A stretch of DNA of 64,000 nucleotides from the NCBI GenBank assembly GCA_907165135.1, contig OU015566.1:11718001-11782000 (forward strand), written 5' to 3'. The notes under the pieces were generated by a model that saw only the letters and a program-made list of their open reading frames with translations, was not told where the DNA came from and made no database searches. The translations under genes were made by a program, and so were the position numbers. This document shows, one piece after another, positions 15,879-40,800 of this stretch. The number at the start of each line of letters is the position of its first letter. The first letter of the stretch is position 1. This DNA is from Oikopleura dioica. Taxonomy: Eukaryota > Animalia > Chordata.

Positions 15879-18800
15879 TCAAGTGGCAGGAAGAAGTTGG
15901 TCGATCATGAGTTCAAGCTTGTTGAATTTAGCGTCGTTATCTTCAACATGAGATGCAAGGGCCTACAAGTTTGCTATTTTCTATGAGATTTAGATTTACC
16001 GTTATTCGTCGATTTATACTCTGCATGAGGGCATCAACAGATGGTGTTTCGTCGAGACACTGTTTGTGCAGCTCTGTAACGGCCTTTTTCGTCACTTTTC
16101 CACTCGAAGTGTCCATATTGAACGCATCCTAGGAAAGCTATACCACTTTTACTTTCAACTTTCGTACCTTAGACATCGTATCTTCCTGAGTTTTGATAGT
16201 CGAGTTTAGGTACTCAATATGAATAAGCTCTGAAATTAGGTGGTAAATAATTAGTGAAGACGAGACCGCGAACCTGCTCTGTATTTATTCGGCATTTGAT
16301 AGACGGCTTCGAGGGTTTGCTTCACTTGATTTGACATTTTTTTGAATATCGCATCTTAATTTTATGAAGACCAAAATACTGATTGACAGAGTACTTGCTG
16401 AAATGAGCTTGATATCTTCGATCGCCAACGCAGCAATCAAATTGACAACAACCAACGGCATCACAATAATAAAAGAAGTGAAGATAATTATCAACGTATT
16501 TTGCGCAATGTCATCAAATGCTATAAACAAGGATGAAAATCAACAAAGAGCAATCGTACTTACATTTGCAATGATCTGTTTCTTCAGTCGCTTCTGGTCC
16601 CAACGCACTACACGGCGTCCCAAATAAATTCTCCCAAGCAAATTTTTCAACAAAAATCAAGCACGTGCTCAAATATGACTAAAAATTTTCAGATATTTCG
16701 GGGAAAAAATGAGTTTTCTTACATTGAAAAAAGTAGCGAAGCTGTCTCGATCCTGAAACATGATCACCATCAAAATCGCAGTCGCAAAAATGGACATGAA
16801 ACATAGAATCGAAAAGCTCGTGAATGTTTTCATGATTTGATTGAACATAATCACAAAGTATCCGATTCCAGGCATTTTCTGCATCTTTACGAGGAGCATC
16901 ATCCACGAAAGCCAAATTGCACAGATTCCGCAAACCCACTGCCACTGCAGAGGAGCACTACTTTCTTCGGGGTTCAAATTGATCGCAAATAGAAAGGTCA
17001 AAACAAACATGAGCATTTCTGCAAGATTGCTAGCCTTTTTCAAGAAATCGAGTCGCTGGTAGCTGATTCGTAAGAACATCACTACAAGCTTGAAAATACT
17101 ATAAATAATGAGGATCCAATCGAGCGCGCTTCGAATATTTCGCAATGAATGACAGTAGTTCATGTCATCTGGCATTTGCGACAAATGGATAGTATCGTAT
17201 TTAGCCGTTGGTAGAAGATTTCCATCATCATCTCGAGGCAAGTAATAATCGATTATCCCAACAAGGTCGATTCCATATTCATGACAGGCAATAGTTCTAT
17301 TTTGGCTGATCACATATGGTGGAGGAATCAAAAGGGCAAAGGCATTCAATAAACCAAGGTACAGCAAGTAGCCAAAAATGCTGAAGTAAAAGTAGTAAAA
17401 GCCTCCACTCTTCCACGTCTCCTGAGTCAAGGCGATCACAACTGGGTGGACAAGCAGGTCTGTCCGCTGGTGCTTGACCATCTTGAAACGGGCTCATGTA
17501 TCCCGTAATGTCGTTTGTTTTAACATTTTTCCTAAACGAATACAATCGTAGGATTTTACGATTTCCGTAACCGAAAAAGCTTATTTAAATTAACTGAGCA
17601 TTAAATATCAAGATACGAGCTGAAAGAATTGAGTTGACAAAATAAACTGTCGTCAGCGTCTATTGATCGATTCCCACGGCTGAAAAAGAGACGGATTCTA
17701 GAGCGTATCCAACTCAAAACTTGTAAGAGAAATGCCCTTAGCTAGCTGTGAATTGACTTCACTCTGCCCAAAAATGTGCAAAATCATTTGGAAAGGTAGT
17801 TTTTAGGGTTCGCAATCAAATAATTTCAAAATTTAAAATTGCTCTAAAAATAACCGTTTTCAGGATTCCCCCCTTTTCAATCATCAAGATTTCATTTCTG
17901 AAATCAGAATTTAAAAATCTTCAGTAGAACTCGAGATATGGCCCCGGAAAAAAGAACGAATTTCATCGGCGCGGGCTGCGCGCTGCGCTGTATGGGTGGC
18001 GCCCGAGTGCTGAAGCAAAGCGCCGAGTCAAACTCTGGCCCAAATCAATTTCACTTGTTCTTTTTCATTTTTTTATGATAATAAAATTAATAATTTAATA
18101 ACTTTAATTAAAAAATATTAGATAAATTAATAAAATATTTAATAATAACTTAACAAATAAAGTTAATAATAAAAATTAAAAAAAAAATAAATATAAATTA
18201 TATAAATACTCATAATTTAAATAAATTATAAAAAAAAAGCATAAATAAACAGAACTCACTCACTTTAGGAGTGTCACATTGATAAAAATAATTTTCTTGA
18301 AATCGCTTTCACGAAGAGGTACCCCGCTGTGTTTGCTTTACGATGGACGCCAGAATTTCATGCTTTGTAACATCATGTCAAACCACGTGCTCGGTCATGT
18401 GACTGGATGTCAGCTAATAACATGCGCAGCTTCATCTCAATATTGGGGATTTTCTTGAATATGTCGTCACAACTGGGTACCCTGCTGTGAATGGCTTATC
18501 ATCGTCGCCAGAATTTCACCTTCTGTCACATGATTTCGAAGCACATAATTAGTCATGTGACCAGATATCAGCTCAAAACATGCGCAGCTTCATCTCGATA
18601 TGGGGGATTTTCTTGAATATGTCGTCACGACTTGGTACCCTGCTGTGAATGGCTTATCATCGTCGCCAGAATTTCTCCTTCTATCACATGATGTCGAAGC
18701 ACACAATTAGTCATGTGACCAGATATCAGCTCAAAACATGTGCAGCTTCATCTCGATATGGGGGATTTTCTTGAAGATGTCGTCACGACTTGGTACCCTG

Positions 18801-21800
18801 CTGTGAATGGCTTATCCTCGTCGCCAGAGTTTCTCCTTTTGTCACATGATGTCGAAGCACACAATTAGTCATGTGACCAGATATCAGGTCAAAACATGTG
18901 CAGCTTCATCTCGATATGGGGGATTTTCTTGAAGATGTCGTCACGACTTGGTACCCTGCTGTGAATGGCTTATCATCGTCGCCAGAATTTCTCCTTCTGG
19001 CACATGATGTCGAATACCCACTAAGTCATGTGACCAGATATCAGCTCAAAACATGTGCAGCTTCATCTCGATATGGGGGATTTTCTTGAAGATGTCGTCA
19101 CGACTTGGTACCCTGCTGTGAATGGCTTATCCTCGTCGCCAGAGTTTCTCCTTTTGTCACATGATGTCGAAGCACACAATTAGTCATGTGACCAGATATC
19201 AGGTCAAAACATGTGCAGCTTCATCTCGATATGGGGGATTTTCTTGAAGATGTCGTCACGACTTGGTACCCTGCTGTGAATGGCTTTTCATCGTCGCCAG
19301 AATTTCTCCTTCTATCACATGATGTCGAAGCACACAATTAGTCATGTGACCAGATATCAGGTCAAAACATGTGCAGCTTCATCTCGATATGGGGGATTTT
19401 CTTGAAGATGTCGTCACGACTTGGTACCCTGCTGTGAATGGCTTATCATCGTCGCCAGAATTTCTCCTTCTGGCACATGATGTCGAATACCCACTAAGTC
19501 ATGTGACCAGATATCAGCTCAAAACATGTGCAGCTTCATCTCGATATGGGGGATTTTCTTGAAGATGTCGTCACGACTTGGTACCCTGCTGTGAATGGCT
19601 TATCCTCGTCGCCAGAGTTTCTCCTTTTGTCACATGATGTCGAAGCACACAATTAGTCATGTGACCAGATATCAGGTCAAAACATGTGCAGCTTCATCTC
19701 GATATGGGGGATTTTCTTGAAGATGTCGTCACGACTTGGTACCCTGCTGTGAATGGCTTATCATCGTCGCCAGAATTTCTCCTTCTGGCACATGATGTCG
19801 AATACCCACTAAGTCATGTGACCAGATATCAGCTCAAAACATGTGCAGCTTCATCTCGATATGGGGGATTTTCTTGAAGATGTCGTCACGACTTGGTACC
19901 CTGCTGTGAATGGCTTATCCTCGTCGCCAGAGTTTCTCCTTTTGTCACATGATGTCGAAGCACACAATTAGTCATGTGACCAGATATCAGGTCAAAACAT
20001 GTGCAGCTTCATCTCGATATGGGGGATTTTCTTGAAGATGTCGTCACGACTTGGTACCCTGCTGTGAATGGCTTATCCTCGTCGCCAGAGTTTCTCCTTT
20101 TGTCACATGATGTCAAAGCACACAATTTGTCATGTGGCCGGAAATCAGCTCAATACATGCGCAGCTTCCCCTCCACACTACTGATTTTCTTGAAGATGTC
20201 GTCATAACCGAGTTACCCCCGGATTCACCTCAACACTGACGATTTTCTCAAATATGTCGTCCTTAATGGTATCACCGATGAGAATGCCTTATAATCGACG
20301 CCCGAATTTTTCCGTTTGTCACACGAATATCGAGGAAATGTTTAGTTTTTTGACCAGATATCTTTTCTATACATGCGCAGCTTCACATTGATACTGATGA
20401 TTTTCTTTCTATGATCAACCTACCGCGCATCTTCATCATCATCAACCTCGGCGTCGTCCAACATTTCGCCGTCTAAGCGCGTTTAGATCAAATTCGAACT
20501 CATATTCACTCACCGAGATCGCCTCTGAAATCGTCCAGCTCCGGAATAGCTCGATAATCATTCTCCATTCCATCGCCGAAGAGTTCTTGTAGCGGCTCTC
20601 CAGCGCCAGATGAGTCGTTGTCAATCGCAGGCGACGAATCGCTGAATTAATGATTAATAGCTCCTTAATGATTTTCTTACTTTAGCCATTCATCTTTAGA
20701 CTCGTGCAGGTATGGGCCGTCATTGCTCAACTCCTCGAGACAATAAACAGTTTCCTTACGGATTCTCTCCGGATTTCGCAATTTTCTTGTTATGTTCGAT
20801 GTTGCTAAAGAATTGTTATTTACAAAAGCAAGAGTTTTTCGGATTACCATTTTTCGGAAAACAAAAAACTCTTATCAAACGAACAGACCCCCGGAAAATA
20901 CATGAGCGGAGCTAAATTTTTTAATACGAAATGATAAGAAATTAGAAATTACATTAGATGTGAGTAGACCATGTAGGTGACGGCTACGATCTTGCGGGTC
21001 TTGCAGTTGGAGCGATTTTTCGTCGAGAAACTCGAGAAAGTCGGATTTGATCGTTTTTTCAATTGCCGTAAGGGGCTTCCTGATACGGTTCTTACACTTT
21101 TCATTTCGTTTGATAAAATCAAAGCGATTGAACTATGAATTTTATTGAAAAAATGCAGCAAAAGATAAAATTTACCGAGGAAACATTTATCGGAAAAACA
21201 AGTTCACGATCGAATAGCGGCCCAACGAACTCGTCGGCGAAAGAGAAAACGATATTCACAATAGCCATGACTCTAAAATCTTAAAAATAAGGTCTTGAAC
21301 AAATTTTAAGGTAAAAAACGAAAAAAAAACACCAAAAAATCAATTTTTTAAAGAAAGTCCGATATTTTCACCGATAAACCGGTTAATACCGGTCATTATA
21401 TGTGGAGAAGAAAGAGGAGAAGCTACGGTTTCTAACAATATAAAAAAATAAAAATTTGGGCAGGGATTCGGGCTAAAACCGATAAATGTCCGGAAAACCG
21501 GCTTTTTCGGCGGCGTAAATATAAGCAGTCGGAAAAGGAAGAAAAATGACGTCGATTGATGTGCTGCAAGTCATAGTTTCTCTATTATTTTCTCTTTTTG
21601 GCAGCAATTCGCCTTTTTTCGTCTCGACGAGACTAAAAAGGTTGCACGTGCATGATGAGTCATACAGTACCAAAAATTTCAAAATTTTCAAAATAACGCA
21701 AAATTCAATTTATGGGCATCATTCGATAGGAAATCAAATTCTCTACAATTTTTATAATAGTAAAAGAAGATTCAACCCCTTTTTCAATGCAAAAAGGGAT

Positions 21801-24800
21801 GATTTGTCTCTTATCAGTAAAATTTCAACCTTTAAAAATTTTTCATTGTCCACATTTTTTCATTATTTTCTTTATAGATTTATACTAAGAATGTTAAGAC
21901 TCATTCATTTTTGACAAAAACAGCTAATACCTCATCAAGGTTTTCGAGATATTCGAGGTTGTCAATGTTGAACTTTTGGTGTTTCAAGCTATGATCTTGG
22001 CAATATAATAATTAATTAAAGGCTGAAGCTGCGCACGAATAGAGGCGAAATTCGGTCACATGATAGAACACATGTTCCAGAATCATGTGACAAAAGAAAA
22101 ATATCTGGCATCGACAATAAGGCTTCCACAGCAGGGTACCCAGTTGGGACAACATATTCAAGAAAATCGTCAGTATCAAGGTGAAGCTGCGCATCAATTG
22201 ACCTGATATCAACTCACATGACTCAACAGGTGTTCTCGAATCATGTGACAAAAGGAAAAGTTCTGGCATCGCTGATAACGCATTCACAGCGGAGTACTTA
22301 GTTAGGACAACGTATTCAAGTACTTCGTATGACATGTTTATGTCCGACAATATTGCTTTCTCCACAATTTTTCGACAATTTGTTATCAGATATGAATTTA
22401 TTATGCTCTTGTCTTTGTTTAAAAGATGTAAACAGCAAATACCTCATCAAAAGTTACAAGAAATTTAAAGTTGACTATGCTTAACTTATGGAACAACGGT
22501 TGAGACAATGTATTGAAGAAAATTGTCAGTATCACGGTGAAGCTGCGCATCAATTGACCTGATATCAAGTCACATGACTCAACACATGTTTTGCAATCAT
22601 GTGACAAAAAGAAAAGTTCTGGCATCGCTGATAAGGCATTCACAGCGGGGTACCCAGTAAGGACAACGTATTCGAGAAAATCGACAGTATCAAGGTGAAG
22701 CTGCGCATCAATTGACCTGATATTAAGTCACATGTCTCAACACGTGCTCCTGAATTATGTGACAAAAGAAAAATATCTGGCATCGACAATAAGGCTTCCA
22801 CAGCAGGGTAACCAGTTGGGCCCACGTATTCAAGAAAATCGTCAGTATCAAGGTGAAGCTGCGCATCAATTGACCTGATATCAAGTCACATGACTCAACA
22901 CATGTTTTGCAATCATGTGACAAAAGGAAAAGTTCTGGCATCGCTGATAAGGCATTCACAGCGGGGTACCCAGTCTGGCCAACGTATTCAAGAAAATTGT
23001 CAGTATCAAAGTGAAGCTGCGCATGTATTGACCTGATATCCGGTCACATGACTCAACACGTGTTCTGCAATCATGTGACAAAAGGAAAAGTTCTGGCATC
23101 GCTGATTAGGCATTCACAGCGGGGTACCCAGTTGGGACAACGTATTCAAGAAAATCGTCAATATCAAGGTGAAGCTGCGCATGTTTTGATCTGATACCTA
23201 GTCACATGTTTCAACACATGTTCTGCAATCATGTGACAAAAGGAAAAGTTCTGGCATCGCTGATAAGGCATTCACAGCGGAGTACCCAGTTGGAACAACG
23301 TATTCAAGAAAATCGTCAGTATCAAGGTGAAGCTGCGCATCAATTGACCTGATATCAAGTCACATGACTCAACAGGTGTTCTCAAATCATGTGACAAAAG
23401 GAACAGTTCCGGCATCTATGATAAAGCATTCACAGCGGGGTACCCAGCTGGGACAACGTATTCAAGAAAATTGTCAGTTTCAAGGGGAAGCTGCGCATAA
23501 ATTGAGCTGATATTAAGTCACATGACTCAACACATGTTTTGCAATCATGTGACAAAAAGAAAAGTTCTGGCATCGCTGATAAGGCATTCACAGCGGGGTA
23601 CCCAGTAAGGACAACGTGTTCGAGAAAATCGACAGTATCAAGGTGAAGCTGCGCATCAATTGACCTGATATTAAGTCACATGTCTCAACACGTGCTCCTG
23701 AATTATGTGACAAAAGAAAAATATCTGGCATCGACAATAAGGCTTCCACAGCAGGGAACCCAGTTGGGCCCACGTATTCAAGAAAATCGTCAGTATCAAG
23801 GTGAAGCTGCGCATCAATTGACCTGATATCCAGTCACATGACTCAACAGGTGTTATCGAATCATGTGACAAAAGGAAAAATTCTGGCATCGATGATCAGG
23901 CATTCACAGCGGGGTACTTAGTTAGGACAACGTATTCAAGTACATCGTATGACATGTTTATGTCCGACAATATTGCTTTCTCCACAATTTTTCGACAATT
24001 TGTTATCAGATATGAATTTATTATGCTCTTGTCTTTGTTTTAAAGATGTAAACAGCAAATACCTCATCAAAAATTACAAGAAATTTAAAGTTGACTATGC
24101 TTAACTTATGGAACAACGGTTGAGACAATGTATTGAAGAAAATTGTCAGTATCACGGTGAAGCTGCGCATCAATTGACCTGATATCAAGTCACATGACTC
24201 AACACATGTTTTGCAATCATGTGACAAAAGGAAAAGTTCTGGCATCGCTGATTAGGCATTCACAGCGGGGTACCCAGTCTGGCCAACGTATTCAAGAAAA
24301 TTGTCAGTATCAAAGTGAAGCTGCGCATGTATTGACCTGATATCCCGTCACATGACTCAACACGTGTTCTGCAATCATGTGACAAAAGGAAAAGTTCTGG
24401 CATCGCTGATTAGGCATTCACAGCGGGGTACCCAGTTGGGACAACGTATTCAAGAAAATCGTCAATATCAAGGTGAAGCTGCGCATGTTTTGATCTGATA
24501 CCTAGTCACATGTTTCAACACATGTTCTGCAATCATGTGACAAAAGGAAAAGTTCTGGCATCGCTGATAAGGCATTCACAGCGGGGTACCCAGTCTGGCC
24601 AACGTATTCAAGAAAATTGTCAGTATCAAAGTGAAGCTGCGCATGTATTGACCTGATATCCCGTCACATGACTCAACACGTGTTCTGCAATCATGTGACA
24701 AAAGGAAAAGTTCTGGCATCGCTGATTAGGCATTCACAGCGGGGTACCCAGTTGGGACAACGTATTCAAGAAAATCGTCAATATCAAGGTGAAGCTGCGC

Positions 24801-27800
24801 ATGTTTTGATCTGATACCTAGTCACATGTTTCAACACATGTTCTGCAATCATGTGACAAAAGGAAAAGTTCTGGCATCGCTGATAAGGCATTCACAGCGG
24901 AGTACCCAGTTGGAACAACGTATTCAAGAAAATCGTCAGTATCAAGGTGAAGCTGCGCATCAATTGACCTGATATCAAGTCACATGACTCAACAGGTGTT
25001 CTCAAATCATGTGACAAAAGGAACAGTTCCGGCATCTATGATAAAGCATTCACAGCGGGGTACCCAGCTGGGACAACGTATTCAAGAAAATTGTCAGTTT
25101 CAAGGGGAAGCTGCGCATAAATTGAGCTGATCTTCGGTCACATGACTTGACATGTGATCCGAAATTATATTATAATGGGAGAAATTATGGCTTTGATGAT
25201 AAGGCATTCTCAGCGGGGTACCCAGCTGTTACTACTTAATCAAGAAAATTATCGATAACAAAGTCAAGTCTTATGTGTCTTATGTGTCGTGCTCACATCC
25301 TTTTATATGAATAAATACATAGTGTGATATTTTTGAAAAGAGAGAAATAGTTCTTATTATTATTGGTTTATATATGCATGTATCGTGATTTTTTCTGCTG
25401 ATTCGACAAATTTTTTAATGATAAGTATTATGTCATCATTAAATTTTCCATTGTTTGATATTTTTATAGCCGTTTGTTTTATTATTATTCTGTTTGTACA
25501 GATAAGAAATCTTCTTTGTTCAGCATATTTCATATTTTGAATTTCGCGCACTTTTTTTTTTCTAAACAATAATTTTTTAATTTCCAAGTACGATCCACCA
25601 ACCATTCCAAATCGCTTGAATTTTTGACAGGAGGGTTATTTTGCCTGTATAAATGTATGGTCGAGGTTGCGAAATCGTAGAACACCTGTGAGCAGAGATA
25701 TTGATTATTTTCCGGAATTTCTAGCTCATAATTTGTTTGTTTGTTTATTTTTCTCATTTTTTTTCGATTTTTTAGATTCCCTTATACCGATTTACTATAC
25801 TAAAATTCAATTTTATTGTTATTCAAGATGGTCAAAATTATTTGATTGCGAACCCTAGTAGTTTTACGATGAAACAATTCGCCAAAAACACAGTATTCAG
25901 AGGTTGTTGACATGGGTGACTGTGCGAATCTAACGCAATTTCAAATCAACGAATATGAAGAAAGATGGGATTCAGGCGGTTGTCATGAAATGGTACAATA
26001 GCATCATAAATTTATCTGTTATTATATTATCAATTTTAGTACTTATGCAACAACTCTCAAATCGTCAGGGCATCAGTGATATTTTTCCTTTTGTTCATTT
26101 TACTGTGTAAATAAATGAGAGTCTGGTTACGAGACTGTCAATTTGACAGTGTCGAATATAAAAGCTCTAAAATCTCGTTGTTACGTTAATTCATTGTCAC
26201 TCTTTTACGACTCTTTAATCGACTCGCCTTAGAGTCTAAGACGGCTTAATTGAATAAAGAAAGAAAAACTTGCAGAGATATAACTTGAAAATGGTCTGTA
26301 CAAATCCAATGGCATGTCCCAAAATGTGCAAAATTTTGACAAAAGGTATTATATACGCAAATAATATATAGACTAAGAGCATAGTAAGTATAGTAAATGT
26401 GTTTTAGAGATCGAAGATCTTGGGGGATGTGGCGCATTGACGCCAGAGCAATCGAATACTTACGCAACTAAATGGAAAATTGGTGGTTGCAAGGAATTGG
26501 TATTTGAGATTGATAAATGCTTATTTTATGGTTTTTTAGAGCTTTTGTAGTGGTTCGGAAATCGTTGGTATTTCAGTTTTGTTGTGTCTTATTCTATTTT
26601 TTCTGTATAAATAAAAGTCATGAGCCCTTGTCAAAATGAGCGGATTATTCGTATATAAGACTTTTGAGTTCTCGCTGTACGGCCTGACTGTAATGACAAT
26701 CTCCGAGGTATAATTCGGCTGAAGAATAACATCCATCAAGCTCGCCGAGTTATTTTCCGCATTTTTTCTTACTCCCGCGTTGAACCATTTCAAAATTCGG
26801 TAGTCGTCGCTGATCCAGGACACTTTGCATTGAATCTCGAGCTCTTTGACATCCAGATCTTGGCGAGCACATTTGGCAAATTCGACGCCTCGGACTTTCA
26901 TGCAGCGATTGAGTACCATTAACGCTTCGTCTGGCATCACTTCGATAAGTTTTCGGAAAGGAGTTGTAAATGGCTTTGGCGAGATTTTCGACCGATTATT
27001 TTTCTTGATTCAAAAAGCAGAAAAAACTCGATCCTTTGATGGAATTGCCGTTCTGACCGCATTGCAAAGTACCGATTCCCAGTGATCTGTTTGAATAAGC
27101 AGCTGAACAATATCAGGCTGTTGACCATCAATTGCATAGTCTAGGCAATTTCTTCCGTTGTCGTCTCGCTGATTGATAGACTCGTACCATTTCAGGATAA
27201 ATTTGACCACTGGAACTTGACCTCCTCTACAAGCGTGCATCAAAAGAGTGACTTTGTGCGCATCAGGTTTCTGAATAATCTGCTTGAATTCCGTTTCTCC
27301 CGCGTGTTTCTCGATGTATTGGACGAACCGGAACCAGAAATCTACGGCTTCGTCTTTTCTGTCTTTGACTGTCACGTTTCTCAGGAGTGCGAAAAGAAGG
27401 GTTCTCCCATTTTCCTTCAGCGTAAATTTGAAATCAAGTTCTTTGAGTCGCCAATGATAGTTTTTCAGCACATCGGTCGCAAAGTACCACATGATTCGCC
27501 AAAGAACAGCCTCCATTTGTAACGATTTATCCTGCACTTGGACATGTTTGATGATGTCTTTGAAAAGTTCCAAGTCTGTGTTGCGCCCACGAGCGTGAAT
27601 GAAGAATTCTAGTGTGTTCATCATCGCAAATCGCTCATCCTTGATTTCAACTCTTCGGACAAGATTAGATTTCGCAAGCATGGTTCGGATGAGAGTCTTT
27701 ACTTTGAAACTATTTTTGAAGTGTTCTTCGATCGGCCCGATTTTATTCTCGAATCGGATCTGAAAAATGATCATTAGTAATGATTCAATACAGTCTGACA

Positions 27801-28283
27801 AACACATGATTTTTTACCTCATGACTGTTGATAAGATAAAGAATTGGGGTCCAACCATCTTGGTCTTGAACATCAAATCCAAATTTTTCTCCGAGAGCAA
27901 GAAGAACCTCATCCAGATTGAGATTAACGATGCAGAAATGAAATAAAGTCATCGCTTGACGATTTTGAGAAGGAAGAGACACCAAATGAAGCTGTTTTAT
28001 TGTTGGAATAACTTGAAAATAACTTGAATCCAAAATAAGATGGTACAAAATGCTAACCTTGTGTCATTGTTTGAATTTGAAGCCGCGTTACAACTCCGTT
28101 TTCAGTTCTCATTACTTCTTTCAGCATAAGCCAGAAAGCATACTCGTTCGGATACATTTTCTCCATCTCTTTTAGTGAAAGAACCGGCCGATAGCCAGGA
28201 CGTATTCCATCGTAGACATTTTGCCTCGGTCGATTTCCAACGGAATGCGCTCCGAGATAACCAGGAGCAGAAGACCCGCTCAT
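15879..28283 (-). CDS. TRPA-like ankyrin-repeat cation channel with a ~9.2-kb intron (approx. 17482-26661)
   Basis: Ankyrin repeats (TLLMHACRGGQ..GRNCLDYAIDGQQ) in 27010..27807. Linker TPFRKLIEVMPDEALMVLNRCM resembles TRPA1. MVKHQRTDLLVHP..TWKSGG pre-S1 and S1-S5 lie in 16669..17481, S6 (MPLVVVNLIAALA) in 16285..16530, then a C-terminal coil. Confidence 0.85.
18270..20405 (+). repeat. Tandem satellite array 1, ~157-158-bp monomer, ~13 copies, partly dimeric (315-bp period)
   Basis: The same small ORF recurs at 18898, 19371, 19686 and 20001 (spacings 473, 315, 315). Monomers carry GGTACCC(T/C)GCTGTGAATG and inverted GTCACATGA/TCATGTGAC. Confidence 0.95.
20424..20641 (-). pseudogene. MCM2: Captured MCM2 N-terminal (histone-binding domain) fragment; two exons, 41-bp intron
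   Basis: Spliced translation [59 protein letters not shown] matches the MCM2 motif [22 protein letters not shown]. Exons 20514-20641 and 20424-20472; GT-AG intron 20473-20513. No MCM ATPase exons follow. Confidence 0.85.
22020..25260 (-). repeat. Tandem satellite array 2: same ~158-bp family, inverted orientation, diverged subfamily, with a ~1.62-kb higher-order duplication
   Basis: The reverse complement aligns with array 1 monomers (GTCATGTGAC..GCGCAGCTTCAC..ATTTTCTTGAA..GGTACCCCGCTGTGAATG). A ~200-bp non-monomer insert occurs twice (~22320-22510 and ~23940-24130). Confidence 0.95.
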
Positions 28284-28599
28284 TTTTGGGCCTTTGAAAT
28301 CTCTCTGTTCACGATTTAGGGAATTTGCTTGAATAGAAGTGATGGGTGCAGTTTCAGTTTTATAGAGTGCAAATGTTGCGCGCGAACAAATACTTTGTTG
28401 TATCCTGTTATCAGTTGTCTTAATTAAAATGATGAGGATTTTCAATTAAATTTTTATTAATCGATGAGTTTTTCAACGATTCAAATTCAGGAGATGCGCG
28501 TTCCTCGACTGAATAATTCAATCAGATAAACAACACCAAACTCTTGAAGCTGAAATGATAGAAGGTCCCGCTAGTTGGAAAAAGAGATAAATAGACAAA

Positions 28600-31500
28600 A
28601 TGTTCAGATGGTTCAGAAAAAGTAAATCCACAGGTGATTTTCTACTAGTTGTCGTGATTTGATTGATATTATAGGGGACACAAGCTCAGAATACAGTACT
28701 TCGGCCTGCACAAGTTACTCGGCCGAACAATCTGAAGAGGAAAGTGATGAGGAAGAAGAAGACCTGGAAGAACAAGCTGAAGGTATCATAGAATCACATT
28801 CAAGTATCAATTATTTTTTTTGAGAGAGTGAAAGTGATGCTGATACAGTTGTTGAAGATGAATCAGGTGTCAGCTCTCTCGAGGAAGAAGATAGTGCCGA
28901 AGAATCTGAACTTGATTCTGTTGAAATTGTTTCAGAGAAACAGCCAGTTTATAGACAAAATACCGTTGTCAGAGCTCCTTTTTCGGCGATCCAGGTAAGA
29001 AAAAATGAGTAAAGTTTTCAACAATATAACTGCCCAGGAAGATGAAGAAGAGTCAGAAGAGGAAGAAGAAGATGAGGAGTCAACGATTCAAGACATTGAA
29101 GATCACAATCAGCTGATGCTTACTGAGGAGGAAGATTCGAGTGGTACGCGTTTGAATATTTACAAATTTTGAATTATTGATCAGAGGCTCTTGAATCCAG
29201 TGCTTTGGACGAGGAAGAAGAAATCGAAGAATCGGTTGAGATTTCGCAGAGCACAGAAGTACTTTCAGAGAGTCAGACAGAAGAAGAAAGTACAGAAATC
29301 ACAGAGGAAGAGAGCGAGGAAGAAGAGTCGGAAGAAGAAGAAGAGGAGAGAGAGGAAGAAGGAACTACAGTAGAAACAGTAGGGAATAATATGACCACGA
29401 CGGCAGATTTAACAGAAGATGATATCCTTTCGATCACAGAAGAAGATTCAGACATATCAGCGACTACGAAGTCCAAATCATCTAAAAAATCCAGGAAGTC
29501 CCTCAAACTCATCGAGAGAATATCCAGTAGCATGTCCTTGTCCTCAATTTCCTCCGCCGGAATGAGCAAATCTTCCTCACAAAAATCATTGAAGTCAAAA
29601 TTGAAACAAAAAGTATCCGATTCCTGCCAAATCGAGCCAACAAATCCCTCTTTAAAAAGTGAGCATGTTCATCTTCAGCGAGAAACACTATTTGGACTGC
29701 CCAGAGATCACACTGGAGATGCGCTTATTGATGCAGCTACTCAAGGAGCACAGGTATTTCGAATGCCGTATTCTTCAGAATTTTTATTGCTTTTAGCTTT
29801 CTAGCTGATATTAACATCTGAAGTTTAGACAACAACAAAAGTGTCCAACCGAATTCAACAGCTTCTTCAAACACTCTCCAAGCCAAGAAAAAAGCCTCTT
29901 ACTGAATTCTACACTGGTAGCGCAAACGCAACAGCACTTACCGGTGTTCCTCGCGCGACAGGTCAAGTTGGCCACATTCTTGTCGGAAAGCATCTTCCTC
30001 AGCCTGATGACGATTTTCTTGAGCTATTTCTACAGCATGTTTACGAGAGACCAAAAGAGCCAGCTTTTACTTCTTGGAATAGCAAAGGAAAACTCAAAAC
30101 TTGGACCTGGTCGAAGCTCCATGCGAAAGCACTTTCAGCAGCTCACGAGCTCACTGCACGAGTAGAACTCGAAGCAGGGGATACAGTAGCGTTGATGATC
30201 CCAAATGCATCTCCGTTTTTCTTCTTGGCATCATTCATGGGATGTTTACTCGCCGAAATCACCCCAATCTCGATTGAAATGCCCATTACGAATTCAAAAG
30301 AAGGAATGACTGCGCGTTTCGGCCATCTTCTCCGTTCGGCGAATATCACCGTCGTCATAACTACCCCATTTTACGCCAAGGCGTTAAGAAAACGCGATAA
30401 TATTTTGACAAATTGGCCTCATGTCGAATTTGAAAGCTTGCATCTGAAAAATGCGCCCGCGAAATTTGAGTTTACTCCGATCGATCAAAGAACTCAATCG
30501 TCTCGTTTTATGGAGTACAATGTTCAAGGTGGGCAGATTCATGCGATTGTTCGCCCTTCAAAAATGATTGTTCATACTGCCAAGCGGATACAAGATCGGC
30601 TTGGACTTGATTCCTTCGATGTTGTCAGCTGCTTGAGCGATTTCAAGCGACAATCCGGACTCATGTTCGCTGTGCTGACACCAGTGGTAGTGGGATGTCA
30701 CTGTCTGATTTTCCCGTTTACAGTTTGCAAACAGAAGCCTGAGCTTTGGATTGAAACTATTGGCGCAATCTCCGCGACAGTCATTATTGGAAGCTCCAAA
30801 GAATTCGGATGGGGCTCTATGGCCAGATTGAAGGATAAATACGCTACAAAGAAGTCGCCTCTTCCAGATCTAAGCAGTGTCAAATCAACAATCGTCACTG
30901 ATGGTGCTACACCACTCGCTATTACCTATGCCGTTCGAGTTGTATCGGAGATGAGCTCGATTGACCTGTCCCTGTCATCCATGAAGCCACTTGTTTGGTC
31001 CGATCTTGTTGGTGTCGTATGTCTACGAGACAGGGCAGATGATCTTGCTTCTGTCGCGCTGAATCGAGAGTTCTTGACTTTTGGCGTTGTTCGCGAATCA
31101 AAAGGCGATGGAGATCCAATTCATGCTTACTACAACGGTTCCATCGTTCCCGGACTGAGAATGGCTGTTGTTCCTGCCACAAACCATCCTTATGACATGG
31201 TCCAAAACGGCGACTCAAACAAAACCGAGACATTCAAGCCAGTTCGAATGGACGAGCTTGGCGAAATCATCATCAGCGGCTTCGGCCTTGATCATCAAAC
31301 TCTACACAATTTGAATATCGTCGGCGATCGAATTTTCAAATGCAGACTCGATGTTTCCGGAAATAAAAACTACACAAAAGAAGAAAAAACTGAAACTTGG
31401 TCGCGCTATTGGGTGAGAACTGGCATTCTCGGGGCGATGGTCAGATCTGAGGATATTTGCACCCTTGGTAGGATCAAAGATCGACTCGAGATTAGTGGAA

Positions 31501-33933
31501 GATTTCATAACTCGCTTGATATGAGCGTCTCGATTCTCCAAGCAGCGCCGTTTCCTCATGAAAGTCGAGTGATAGTTTTCGATATTCCGGTAATGAGTCG
31601 AAGACGAATTGCAGTTGTGGCTGAGCAGCCACCAGATGTCTGTGACGATGTCGTCTACGGTTGGATGAACGATGTCATGTCTGCAATCAACTCAAAGCAT
31701 CATGAATCTGTCTTTACCATCTGCACCATTCCTGCGGGCGTAATTCCTCGAAAACCAGCCGGCGGTGTTGATATCTTCGAAGTAAGACGGCGACTCTTAA
31801 CCGGAAATCTACATCCACTTCATATTCTCTGCTGCCCTCACGCTGCTATTCATAATCTTCCTCGAGCAAGAGAGAAGATTCTTGGAATGGGGCCGAATTC
31901 GATTATGCAAGGCTTTGTTGTAGCAGGATCGCAGCCAGCAGAAATCACTACTGATCCGATTCCCGAGGAAATTTTCATGTTCGAGAAGCCTATTCATCAG
32001 CTTCTTTTGGAAATCGCCGAGTTACCATCAGTAAAAGAAAACGTTATTATGCTCAACAATCCTCAAGACGTTGGAGGACAACCATCTCGACTGACATTTG
32101 CTCAACTTTCTCTCGAAGCGAGAAAATTCGCTGGGAGACTTTTGGCTGCTGGAATCAAGGCAGAAGATCGAGTGATAGTTTGTCTCAAGTCTACGATGTT
32201 TCCCATTGGCATGTATGCTTGCTTGCTTGTTGGCTGCGTTCCGATTCCGATAAGGCCGCCTTCTGAAAATTCAATTTCTACTGTAGCCCTTGTTTGCAGA
32301 GAATCAAAAGCGAAAATTGCCATCACCTCTACTTCTATGGTGCGTTTTCTAAGGAAGTCACTCCATATTCAAGTTTTTCCAATCGACGATGTCGACGAAA
32401 GCACCGAAAGCATCGCTCCCATCGAAACTTTCGCTCAATTTTTCAAGGGCCCTGAAAATCTGTGCTATGCAGATTATACTGTTTCCGCTTCTGGATACTT
32501 GTATGGAAGGCCAGTGACTTTTAAAGAAATTGCATTTCAATGCGCTCAATTGAAAGCGCAGCTGGATCTTCAGTCTTTAGCTACGGTTCTGTGTGTTTTA
32601 GAACCTTACAATGGATTGGGGCTAATTTTATCCGTGTTTCTGCCTGTTTATTGTGGAGTAGAGGTATCTCTACGAATTTGATGTCGTTTCATTTTTCCTA
32701 GGTTTTTCATATTCTACCATCTTGGTCAGAATGGCGAGTTGATGCTCTCATGGCACTGATGACAAAGCATGAATACATATTTCTACAATCTACTGTCGCA
32801 GAAAGTATCATCGAGAGCAATAGTTGCCAGGATGCAAGAAAAGCATTCGACATGCGTGCTGTGCAGCAGCTATCGATTGTCCACCAGTCGAAGGCAGATT
32901 TTGGGCTGATAGATGGAGTAAGAGAGACACTGTCGCGATATGATCTCAGGAATGGTTTAATCAAAATCATAGATGAGAATTAAATTTGCAGATCTTTTAA
33001 ACCATCTTTGAGCGGAATAAAAGTAGCTCCGATTCATGTTTCCAACTTGACGCCAATTCTAGCACTGCCAATGCCAACGGTAGAATTTAAAATCTTCATG
33101 CGAAACTGAAGTTTTTTAGAAACCACAATTGACTATTCGCTATTTGGATAAGAAAGAACTCCGCAATGATAGAATTCAATTTACCGCAAAGGGTGCTCCA
33201 TTTTCGACGGCGATTTTATGTGCTGGTCCTGTTGCTCCTGAAAGTAAAGCTATCATTGTGAATATATCAACTGGTGGCCAAGCAGGAATGAATCAAATCG
33301 GCGAGCTTTGGGTCAGTAAACGATCTATTCTCATTTTTTAATATTTTCTCAAGATCTCCAAAAACAATCGCACAAGAAATTACGAAACAGTGGTTGGGGC
33401 CGGGGCCAATTTTATAGCTGAAAATGAAAGTCTTCATGCAACGGTTAAAACTGGCTGTTCAAAAACGCTTTTCATCCGGACCGGCCTGCTTGGTTTCATC
33501 ATGTCCCCTCAAGGACCCGATTTACCTCCAGAACTCTTCATAACTGGTAGAATTGCTGATCAAATTGTCATAAGAGGGATGAGTTTCGCGCCAGAAGATA
33601 TCGAAAACTGCGTCAAAAGAGCGCATAGAGCCATAAGTTCTTGCGCAGCATTTTCTATTGCTGGTTTATTGGCTGTTGCAATCGAGCTTCCAGGGCCAGA
33701 AGGGATAGCTCTTGATTTGGTAAGAAGGCGAAAGATGCAAGAATAATTTATTTCAGTCCCTGCTTGTTACAATGCGACTACTCAATGAGCTCGAGATTCC
33801 GCTTGGAATTTTTGTCGTTTTGGATCCAGGAACTATCCCTACAGACTCAGCAGGGGGAAAACAAAGAAAACTACTTTGCGATCTTTTTGTCGAGAATGCT
33901 CTCGACCCTATATTTGTTGCTTACAATATGTGA
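28600..33933 (+). CDS. DIP2: Disco-interacting protein 2 homolog (tandem adenylate-forming domains) with long acidic N-terminus
   Basis: VSNRIQQLLQTLSKPRKKPLTEFY resembles the DIP2 motif VSAKIQQL..LKRPKRPPL. Long exon 29841..32681. C-terminus LDPIFVAYNM-stop resembles LDPIYVAYNM. Confidence 0.92.
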
Positions 33934-37871: not shown

Positions 37872-40800
37872 TTGAATTGCAAGTGCCATCGAGGGGTTGC
37901 TGAGAAAAAAAAGGACAAGGAGAAAGGATGTGAAGATGAAAATTCTGCGGAAAAGTTTCCTATTTGCTCATGTTCGATACAAATGTACGGGTACTGTTTG
38001 GATCCCTACAACGAAGATTACTACGACCTTGATAACTGGAAACTCTTGCCGATCAAGAAGCCGCATATAAATGAAAATTACTGTCAAGTGAAGTATACTG
38101 ATATGTGGAACAAGTGGATAGGCACGAGATTATAAATAACAAATTTACCTGATGATCTTGAGGAGAAACCAGTTGACGGTAGTGGTTAATTTGATCTTCT
38201 ATCGCGCTCTAAAAATTTTCATGAGACAATTCTTAATTTTGATTCTTCAAGTAAAAATTAAAACCGTGTTATATGAGTTTGCGGGGATGTGTTTTTTATA
38301 CTGTCCTGTTTCCTGTTTTGCAGATGGTCTCAAAAAGAAATTCCTCTTCCTGTATATGACTATTAGTTATAAAAATTATTTAAATCTCTTAAAAAGCCAC
38401 GCGGATGGCAGATAACGTGACGGGCTCGACGCGGCTCAACATGAAACAATTTAAAGCTGTCATTGGAAAGAATTTTTCAACTGAAATGGATGCTGATCTT
38501 TTTAACGAAAAACGCACGACTAGAATACGACAAAACGCACAGTATCACCTTCATAAATCGATCGTTACCGATGATGAGAGCGTTGTTTGCCAAGCCTACA
38601 GAATGCAAAATTTGAGAGTTTGGTGGTGCGACCCCGTAATGGAAAAATATAGTGGCTCAGTTATGGTTCAGAAAATTGATCTACCTGTTGAAAAGTACTG
38701 TTAGTGGATAACGTTGAGCTTATGAATGTAGTCCAATCCAGAGTTGGTTAAAAAGTATACTTCATATGAGCTTCAGTGATGAAGGAATTCCGAGCCATTT
38801 CGTACTTCAATGCGCTTCAAGAATGAAGGGCGCTCTGCAGAATTTTGTAGCGCAGGGGGAAGTGCACTTTTTCCAGCTCTGGTCCAACCCCTAAAATATA
38901 TTTCTCTGAACTTATAAAAGACAATTTTTATAGGCGCAACACTGTATTTACAACTGAGTACTATTATCGACAATTGTCGCGTGCAACAACGATTTATATC
39001 GGTACCAAATAATCCCTATTGCACTCTGTAGCTTCTATATTAAGATGGCATTTTTTCGATAGCGAATAAATGTGGCGATGTCATGCAGTTGATAGTAATA
39101 TCAGAAGCCGTCAAGCATGGAGAAAATATTTTCAGAGGATTTGGCGTACCGCGTTATTATATTTTGGTTCCGAGTAAATCAAGCGATTGCTACGAACAAA
39201 TTTGGCGAGAGCTAAAGAAGAACACAAATGGAATGCCAAACTTACAGTGCATAGTTACGTAAGTACCTTTGAGATCGTTGGAGAATGAAAGGAAGCGGAC
39301 AGAATTGCGGTCGTGTGCTGGGCGAGAAGGTAGTCGGTAGTTGAACTTTCGCGTGAATCTATTCCCTTCGCAGGAGATCTGCTTCCAGAACTAGCTGCAG
39401 ATAAAATGCTGGTATGATGTTATCAACGCGTGGCTTCGCCATGTCACCTGAAATTCATCCTAAATTTCAAGTGAAAGTGTCTCTCGATTCGCTGAAATTT
39501 TCATAGAAATTGAAGGTTCTCTTCCATGATTTCAGAAATTGAAGAGCTTTCTGGTCTCGGCAGCCTGGATAGAAAACCTGGGTCAGGGACCCTGACTCAG
39601 GGTCTCAGATAATTTTAAATGAAAAGCCGCATAGCGGCTTTTTTAAGAAACGAAGCCGCATCGCGGCTTCGCCAAAATGGAATAATAGGTTGAAAATGAA
39701 TAACCGCTAAAATAAGTTTTTTTGCAAAGCCGCTTTGCGGGTTCGTTTTAAAAAAAGCCGCTACTTAAGATCTTTCGGACCCTGGCTCAGGATTTCTACA
39801 CAGGTTGCGAAGCGCAGTTCTACCTTTGTCGAAAAGAAACGGGTGCCAGGGACAAGATGGTTTCTGCCAGGCGGCGACCAAGTTGTCTAAAACGAAATAA
39901 GGGAGAACGAAGGGACCTGAAAAGCTACCGAGGATTTTGTAGATGACGCTGTTGCGAAAGAGCACATCGGGAAAGAGGACGGCCATGCGCTGTCTGTACT
40001 TCCAGAGCTCCCACTTGACGATCGCTTAGGATCGTCGCCGTCAGCTCCAGCCCGATCGGCGTGAACGTTTGAAGAAAGAATTCCCCAATGTAACCCATCA
40101 CAAATGTGGCTTTCATCAGTACCAGTCGTTTCGACGCGCAATCGGAAGATACGGCCTGCTCAGGACGTATGATCATCGATTTGACGACGATGAAGAAGCT
40201 GGCATGAAATCAAGGAAGAAAAAATCGAAAAAGTCGAAAAAATCAGATACTGGTGGAGTGTGTTCTGAGCTTAAAAAGCTCCTCTACGCAGCGCAATATT
40301 TTCCCTTGGGAACTGAGCGTATCAGAGTCGCCTATATCGACCTAATTCAGCAGCAGATTGATGGATTGAAACTCAAGGGTCAAGCTGCTGATTGGGATTC
40401 CTTCATGCGCTACTTGTTGCAAACATATTTCGCCACTGATGCTACATTCCCACCAGATTCATGGGCAGATATTTCAGCGCGGAGAATACGAAATGGCGCA
40501 GGAATGTTTAGATAAGCTCATTTGAGAACAAATTTGAAATCTTACCTTTGTAACGTTTTGTTTCCAGCTTTTTGTTGTCGCGCGCTGATGCGTTTTTCAT
40601 ACTTGTGATAGACCAATTCGATGAAGCTATCGCACCTAAAGCAGAAATCAATTCGATTGTCAGTTAATATAATTGTATGTTGAGTAATATAAGCCCTTAT
40701 TCTTGCATATAAACTAGAAAAGTTGATCAAACGAATAATATTTCCGAATCCGGAAATGCGAGCTTGCTACGGGGCGTCGAGCGAAGGCCTGATTTCGGTG

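Follow-up and report, generated by a model that had tools for sequence, protein, structure and literature searches.

A fragment of the MCM2 histone-binding domain at the end of a predicted six-exon open reading frame in a candidate hAT-type transposon of Oikopleura dioica

Can a piece of the MCM2 gene, carried inside a transposon at another site than the gene itself, still be part of a working gene? The question is raised by positions 20424-21268 of a 64,000-nucleotide stretch of the Oikopleura dioica genome (assembly GCA_907165135.1, contig OU015566.1, positions 11,718,001 to 11,782,000 of the forward strand). This whole stretch is called the window, and all coordinates refer to it unless another sequence is named. 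The original prediction, made from the sequence alone, had described here an isolated pair of exons for MCM2's histone-binding domain (HBD), captured at the DNA level and possibly part of a chimeric spliced open reading frame (ORF). Here we report that the exon pair derives from 163 bp of MCM2 and closes an intact, predicted ORF of 213 codons. On whether this ORF is a working gene our judgement is evenly divided, with the substitution pattern and the intact six-exon frame speaking in its favour.

The two HBD exons lie on the minus strand at 20641-20514 and 20472-20423 and encode ...ELFGDGMENDYRAIPELDDFRGDL / DGEMLDDAEVDDDEDAR. The spliced peptide of 59 amino acids matches the human MCM2 HBD chains 5bnv, 4uuz and 5c3i with E ~1e-6 over human residues 68-104, the alignment to the crystallised domain being gap-free through residue 90, and the whole MCM2 piece corresponds to human residues ~66-104. 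Against Pfam MCM2_N (PF12619) the peptide gives E 6e-4 at profile positions 18-63 of 151, a positive match that at 20.6 bits stays below the 23.6-bit gathering cut-off; the query is a fragment of the domain. The identity of the exon pair as MCM2 HBD is upheld by the human chains together with the homology to the MCM2 locus (E 4e-51) described below.

The human domain touches histones through three anchor regions, of which region 1 covers G69-Y81, region 2 covers E86-A96 and is centred on Y90, and region 3 covers V102-R121 including the helix A107-R118 (Richet et al. 2015, PMC4330383). The fragment is directly homologous to regions 1 and 2. The Tyr of DYRAIPELD is the equivalent of human Y81, with GDGMENDY aligned to residues 74-81, so that region 1 keeps its Tyr. 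At the Y90 position the fragment has Phe, as had been read from the sequence, and this Phe is derived because the parent Okinawa MCM2 has Tyr there. Human Y90 docks in an apolar pocket of H3 (PMC4330383), and because the pocket is apolar a Phe may be tolerated; the double mutant Y81A/Y90A is the standard histone-binding-dead MCM2 (PMC8221569). Apart from the Tyr-to-Phe change and one missing Glu, the 41 encoded MCM2 residues are those of the Okinawa parent. Homology ends after ...DDDEDA(R) and a stop follows, whereas in the parent ARAEQDLNRRDRREGRG... / ARAEQDLNRRDRREGRGMDHLMYDDEDDD comes next and makes up region 3. The claim that the element kept the histone-binding module holds for regions 1 and 2 and fails for the helix of region 3. 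Compared with the N-terminal HBD of MCM2 (human 61-130; PDB 5bnv, 4uuz; PMC4330383), the fragment also lacks the MCM core and is joined to an unrelated basic N-terminal part.

The extent of the MCM2 homology was delimited by blastn:

20424-20586, minus strand: MCM2-derived segment of 163 bp, in which 73 nt from the 3' end of MCM2 exon 1 are followed by all 41 nt of intron 1 and by 49 nt from the start of exon 2

Read from 20586 to 20424, the segment matches positions 6184-6349 of L007, the Okinawa reference MCM2 locus on chr2 (GCA_907165135.1, OU015567.1; MCM2 at L007 6001-9059), with 86.1% identity and E 4e-51, the 166 columns containing 20 mismatches and one 3-nt gap. The match to the sister-lineage contig L001 (86%, E 1e-44) is as good. 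Intron 5 of the chimeric ORF has the position and phase of MCM2 intron 1 in L007 and L001 and is 73-80% identical to it; the 41-bp intron that had been described as retained (20513-20473) is thus a homologue of MCM2 intron 1. The genuine MCM2 on chr2, a different site from the window, is complete and has exon 1, intron 1 and exon 2 in place. Because the parent intron was copied along, and because the homology to the genuine locus reaches E 4e-51, the piece is a DNA-level copy (transduplication), neither a retrocopy nor the 5' end of MCM2, in agreement with the capture that had been proposed.

Past either end of the segment, upstream into the rest of exon 5 and intron 4 and downstream at the satellite border, local alignment scores do not exceed those of shuffled sequences. 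A MAFFT placement of TAGGTTGATCAT opposite the intron-2 donor of the parent, which would imply a deletion of 88 nt, was discarded as unsupported, the downstream local alignment being no better than shuffles. Apart from a 63-nt hairpin motif unrelated to the fragment, nothing else in 17500-26000 or in the whole window matched the MCM2 locus.

A word search with the spliced 59-aa peptide led to an 87-aa ORF which is exon 1 of a genuine, tiny-intron MCM2 on the metagenome contigs L001-L004 (Logan SRR23998815 and SRR23998797; ENA ERZ27264819 and ERZ23499026). By cluster look-up this lineage goes with CAG5111782.1, which is MCM2 on chr2 of O. dioica OKI2018_I69, and the Bergen proteins CBY22837.1 and CBY36125.1 belong to a second cluster. 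At the RSL24D1-MCM2 locus the four contigs are 90.8% identical to the Okinawa reference and ~80% identical to the Bergen type; they may represent a separate lineage of the species complex, sister to Okinawa. In total nine MCM2 sequences were compared, namely the reference L007, four wild Okinawa-type contigs (L008-L011) and the four sister-lineage contigs; L008, which was compared in full, is 97% identical to L007. Over the 166 columns the fragment differs from L007 at 20 positions, from L008, L010 and L011 at 21 each and from L009 at 23, and none of the nine comes closer to it than 20 differences.

The carrier of the piece is delimited by the following features:

17796-17803: left 8-bp target site duplication (TSD) GTAGTTTT, an identical octamer standing at both element ends
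17804-17826, plus strand: left terminal inverted repeat (TIR), 23 bp, beginning TAGGG, a perfect inverted match to 25835-25857
18274-20407: left arm of 158-bp satellite, with a clean array at 18394-20204 and degenerate monomers to 20407 (TRF)
21269-22018: unique upstream part of the core, in which no gene was recognised, with no second copy in the window and no Rfam family
22019-25268: right arm of 158-bp satellite in opposite orientation (TRF and comparison of the arms)
25835-25857, minus strand: right TIR, 23 bp, perfect
25858-25865: right 8-bp TSD GTAGTTTT, the same octamer as on the left

The element is 8.05 kb long, and its unique core of 1.6 kb (20408-22018) holds the ORF. The 23-bp TIR has only two matches in the window, where none is expected by chance. 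The satellite has a period of 158 at 93% (TRF), and its two arms belong to diverged subfamilies that are ~75% complementary. Neither a transposase-sized ORF nor an Rfam family was found inside the element. Because the perfect 23-bp TIRs begin with TAGGG and are flanked by an identical 8-bp TSD, the carrier is classed, on its termini, as a non-autonomous hAT-type DNA transposon with foldback arms; the terminus also fits YARNG, which we take to be the terminal motif of hAT elements. As in Pack-type elements, a host-gene fragment (20424-20586) lies within the TIRs (17804-25857) and an intact parent is present on chr2.

Within the core, a spliced gene model on the minus strand was obtained with the following parts:

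21176-21268: exon 1, with ATG 21268
21133-21175: intron 1, 43 nt, GT-AG
20953-21132: exon 2, 60 codons, basic
20912-20952: intron 2, 41 nt, GT-AG
20848-20911: exon 3
20805-20847: intron 3, 43 nt, GTAATC...TTTAG, part of the link that had been left open
20681-20804: exon 4
20642-20680: intron 4, 39 nt, GTAAGA...TTCAG
20514-20641: exon 5, the first 55 nt without recognisable relatives and the last 73 nt from MCM2 exon 1 (ELFGDGMENDYRAIPELDDFRGDL; blastn)
20473-20513: intron 5, 41 nt, GTGAGT...TTAG, a copy of MCM2 intron 1 (same position and phase in L007 and L001)
20423-20472: exon 6, ending in ...DGEMLDDAEVDDDEDAR
20422-20420: TAG stop, overlapping the GT that had been read as a donor

From ATG 21268 to TAG 20422-20420, six exons and five GT-AG introns of 39-43 nt form one frame of 213 codons, in which the frame itself, the start, the stop and all ten splice dinucleotides are intact. 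The last 41 codons come from the MCM2 piece and are fused in frame to ~172 codons without recognised relatives. The ATG, the introns 21175-21133 and 20952-20912 and the 91-codon frame they yield stand as the original prediction gave them. The link from there to the HBD exons, called ambiguous before, is made in the model by the GT-AG introns 20847-20805 (43 nt) and 20680-20642 (39 nt), which join all parts into a single ORF and support the suggestion of a chimeric spliced frame. What does not stand is the last donor, described as running directly into satellite: the GT at 20423/20422 overlaps the in-frame TAG, so the frame closes without splicing, and this GT is not the MCM2 intron-2 donor, which in the parent gene sits 88 nt further on.

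A dynamic-programming search for the longest ATG-to-stop frame under a strict rule (GTRA...YAG introns of 38-46 nt) recovers exactly the 213-aa model, and no longer frame with short introns exists in 20200-22100. Under the same rule the longest frame among 1000 dinucleotide shuffles has 162 aa and that among 422 reversed-sequence windows 112 aa, whereas under a loose GT..AG rule nine of the 1000 shuffles reach 213 aa. The intact spliced ORF exceeds chance under the strict splice rule. An in-frame stop lies four codons upstream of ATG 21268, and a T-rich tract with an AG 4 nt before the ATG possibly marks a trans-splice acceptor. Residues 1-154 are basic, with an isoelectric point of 9.2 and two K/R clusters, and the last 59 residues are strongly acidic.

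Relatives of exons 1-4 and of the first 55 nt of exon 5 were found neither in Pfam (exons 1-4 searched singly) nor in the ESM Atlas (exon 2) nor in the JGI metagenomes (exon 2 and the exon-4 ORF). Exact look-up of six unspliced core ORFs and ten long ORFs of the window found none of them in the protein collection. With exon 5 as query, HMMER returned just four repeat proteins, whose scores were sums over stretches, and MCM2 was not among them.

The age of the capture and the forces acting on the piece were assessed in a three-taxon comparison that set the fragment (F) beside the MCM2 of Okinawa (O) and that of the sister lineage (L), which over 3.5 kb shares 90.8% identity with O. The three form a near-star, their branches meeting at about one point:

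branch F: 8 substitutions, of which 4 synonymous, 1 replacement (Tyr to Phe) and 3 in the intron
branch O: 12 substitutions, of which 5 synonymous, 0 replacement and 7 in the intron
branch L: 13 substitutions, of which 6 synonymous, 3 replacement and 4 in the intron

The only indel on branch F is the deletion of one whole codon, and one further site differs in all three sequences. Between F and O, 27% of intron sites and ~30% of synonymous sites differ, against one amino acid and one missing residue over 41. The Bergen-type MCM2 mRNA (L006) was tried as outgroup and set aside, as its synonymous sites are saturated and leave the changes unpolarised. Substitutions on branch F are biased to synonymous and intron sites: when eight substitutions were placed at random on the inferred ancestor in a neutral Monte Carlo simulation, at most one amino-acid change occurred with P = 0.011, and this together with the absence of a stop and an intact GT..AG with P = 0.007. 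At a neutral-site divergence of ~0.10 per site on branch F, about ten replacement changes would be expected in the MCM2 piece, where one is observed. If the ORF is as old as the piece, a rough estimate gives about ten disabling hits in the 639-nt coding sequence and its ten splice dinucleotides, and none is seen. Judged by this pattern, the MCM2 piece seems to have been kept by selection. We infer that the capture is old, of about the age of the split between Okinawa and the sister lineage, which are 9% apart at the MCM2 locus. Okinawa separated from the other named lineages ~25 Mya (PMC11067885); the split between O and L, and hence the capture, would date to a fraction of that time.

In the explanation that accounts best for these data, a hAT-type element took up 163 bp of genomic MCM2 sequence by copying at the DNA level, and the parent gene stayed intact. 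An old capture retained as a translated, transposon-borne six-exon gene whose product binds H3-H4 is, in our estimate, an even call. The product would consist of a basic N-terminal part, in which the two K/R clusters could serve as nuclear localisation signals, and an acidic tail through which anchor regions 1 and 2 of MCM2 would meet H3-H4 on its DNA-binding face. Lacking both anchor 3 and the MCM core, the product would act as a soluble H3-H4 binder or a competitor of MCM2 and not as a replisome-coupled chaperone.

Several observations weigh against a translated, selected gene. The domain is incomplete, with one of its three histone anchors missing and the critical Y90 replaced. The selection test covers 41 codons and eight substitutions, and it assumes that the parent was the Okinawa lineage's own MCM2. 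Codon usage speaks for the gene in so far as the non-MCM2 part (exons 1-4) scores positive in the proposed frame (+0.06 per codon) and strongly negative in the other two (-0.3), but the bias is weak compared with +0.17 to +0.39 in known genes. No canonical AATAAA occurs within ~170 nt after the stop. In three oligo-dT bulk RNA runs, from each of which ~1.5-1.8 Gb was read, and one single-cell run, no read matched the ORF at 90% identity or more (tested stretch 1751 letters), the runs bearing a species label only and including no positive control for the Okinawa lineage. The stretch is likewise absent from all indexed RNA runs. Among the 1.84 billion representative proteins covered by the full HMMER search mentioned above, there is no near-identical copy of exon 5, a query that at 42 aa is too short for a database of this size. 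Because no representative protein contains exon 5, the 213-codon ORF is probably unannotated.

In the T-rich part upstream of the ATG, at 21312-21488, three RNA reads from two runs align partly at 90-95%; these are most likely matches to low-complexity or repeat sequence and not expression.

The main alternative is a young and inert transduplicate. Its recent capture would have taken place in a third lineage or a divergent haplotype of the O. dioica complex that is so far unsampled, and introgression or horizontal transfer would have brought it into the Okinawa genome. Branch F would then mostly record purifying selection on the genuine MCM2 of the donor lineage, the frame would be intact from youth, and the in-frame fusion would be a one-in-three accident. 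The substitution counts of branch F (4/1/3) are indeed just like those of the two genuine MCM2 branches (5/0/7 and 6/3/4), with which it meets at about one point. The perfect TIRs and TSD at the insertion, the missing reads on the ORF in runs with a species label only, and the sister lineage already revealed by metagenomes fit such a history as well. Against it, the fragment's states (GCT at Ala codon 13, GTT at Val 35, GCG at Ala 41 and three intron states) are carried by no MCM2 among the nine sampled from the two lineages, and an additional, unobserved donor lineage and a transfer event are needed. Y90 is a highly conserved position at which a functioning MCM2 is unlikely to exchange Tyr for Phe, and therefore at least this change would have come after capture. 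On balance we regard a young capture as rather unlikely, though it deserves more credit than any other alternative.

The six mini-exons could also be parts of a longer or different transcript, either spliced into a host gene around the element or continued from the GT at 20423 to a distant exon past the satellite. On one side of the element a transmembrane ORF at 16669-17481 (minus strand) matches human TRPA1 residues ~778-900 with E 1e-7, and on the other side ankyrin-repeat ORFs lie at 26536-28445 on the same minus strand; the element is probably inserted within an intron of a TRPA-like channel gene, with the chimeric ORF in the same orientation. This arrangement, and a GT placed exactly where the MCM2 homology ends, favour a longer transcript. 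The in-frame TAG that overlaps this GT, the ATG of the ORF with a stop four codons before it, and the absence of any longer short-intron frame in 20200-22100 oppose it, and we consider it improbable.

Most gene pieces captured by transposons are old relics in neutral decay, and an inert relic had been the fallback of the original prediction. That the present piece is such a relic, taken from the MCM2 of the Okinawa lineage itself, is unlikely because of the substitution pattern and because no disabling hits are seen, with one replacement change in place of about ten and no disabling hit in place of an estimated ten, and we leave it only a very slight chance; the substitution pattern counts against it only at p ~0.01 and on the condition that the parent was indeed this lineage's MCM2. 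A genuine MCM2 5' end with a satellite-filled intron, or a foldback chimera of the assembly of the kind that can arise as an inverted chimera with nanopore data, is rejected as next to impossible, as chr2 carries a complete MCM2 that has an exon 1, an intron 1 and an exon 2 of its own, homology is limited to 163 bp, the arms are only ~75% complementary, unlike those of a read chimera, and TIR and TSD are clean.

If the preferred explanation of an old, retained gene is followed further, the element might encode a histone-binding decoy. The first two MCM2 anchors would rival the replisome in binding parental histones, so that silent chromatin marks would be copied less well at replication, to the benefit of the transposon family, or they would tether the nucleosome-length satellite arms to evicted H3-H4. 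We offer this as a speculation with little weight.

To our knowledge, there is ample documentation from plants and fungi of DNA transposons that captured pieces of host genes, but little from animals, and captured pieces with signs of selection are rarer still. Transduplication is thus a known kind of event, and what is new here is the chordate host and the unusual cargo, namely the MCM2 region by which parental H3-H4 is held at the replication fork. An expressed ORF would represent a natural minimal MCM2 HBD with two anchors, detached from the helicase, and would offer a ready way to learn which anchors are enough to bind histones; the transposon or the host could in this way be re-using the replisome chaperone motif. 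If the ORF is silent, there is still a clean and datable case in which a hAT element captured exons together with their intron, in a chordate whose genome is extremely compact.

In architecture the element resembles the Drosophila foldback (FB) elements, in which long inverted arms of tandem sub-repeats surround a unique middle able to hold foreign DNA. The Oikopleura element shares the inverted sub-repeat arms around a unique middle and differs in its hAT-like termini, its 8-bp TSD and arms that are only ~75% complementary. Transduplication by DNA transposons has been described for the Pack-MULEs of rice and for Turmoil-1 of C. elegans (PMC2572040), in a source that gives transduplication of protein-coding genes as then unknown in animals. 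These share with the present case a host fragment copied with its intron at the DNA level into a TIR-bounded non-autonomous element, a chimeric ORF and an intact parent, whereas the Oikopleura carrier is hAT-type (8-bp TSD), resides in a chordate and holds a captured part with substitutions biased to synonymous sites. In Dothideomycete fungi, hAT transposons captured histone H3 and reached tens to hundreds of copies, most of them inactivated through RIP, or repeat-induced point mutation (PMC6710886). There, too, a hAT element carries captured chromatin gene sequence internally, but the cargo is a histone coding sequence, whereas here it is a 163-bp exon-intron-exon piece of a histone chaperone at the 3' end of a spliced ORF.

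Outside the element, the plus strand of the window contains at 29841-32681 a 946-codon exon of a DIP2-like gene with an AMP-binding domain. Its Bergen ortholog is CBY37952.1, named DMAP1-binding domain protein. The ORF at 29841-32678 shares 78% DNA identity and 91% protein identity with a Bergen-type-cluster contig, and a word search within the length range returned no Okinawa-annotated protein for this exon.

The 63-nt hairpin motif occurs in the window at 39578-39640, within a candidate Mutator-like element (MULE) region, and on chr2 at L007 9335-9395, in the intergenic spacer between MCM2 and RPB2. It contains two short palindromes, GACCCTGA.TCAGGGTC and AAGCCGC.TAGCGGCTT, and may be a small dispersed hairpin element.

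Upstream of MCM2, L007 2708-5746 is a 3.04-kb insertion flanked by TTAA, with long GC-rich inverted ends and an antisense gene of 637 aa. It occupies a 45-nt intron of RSL24D1 in the reference and appears young and polymorphic, because neither L008, a wild Okinawa-type contig, nor L001 of the sister lineage has it.

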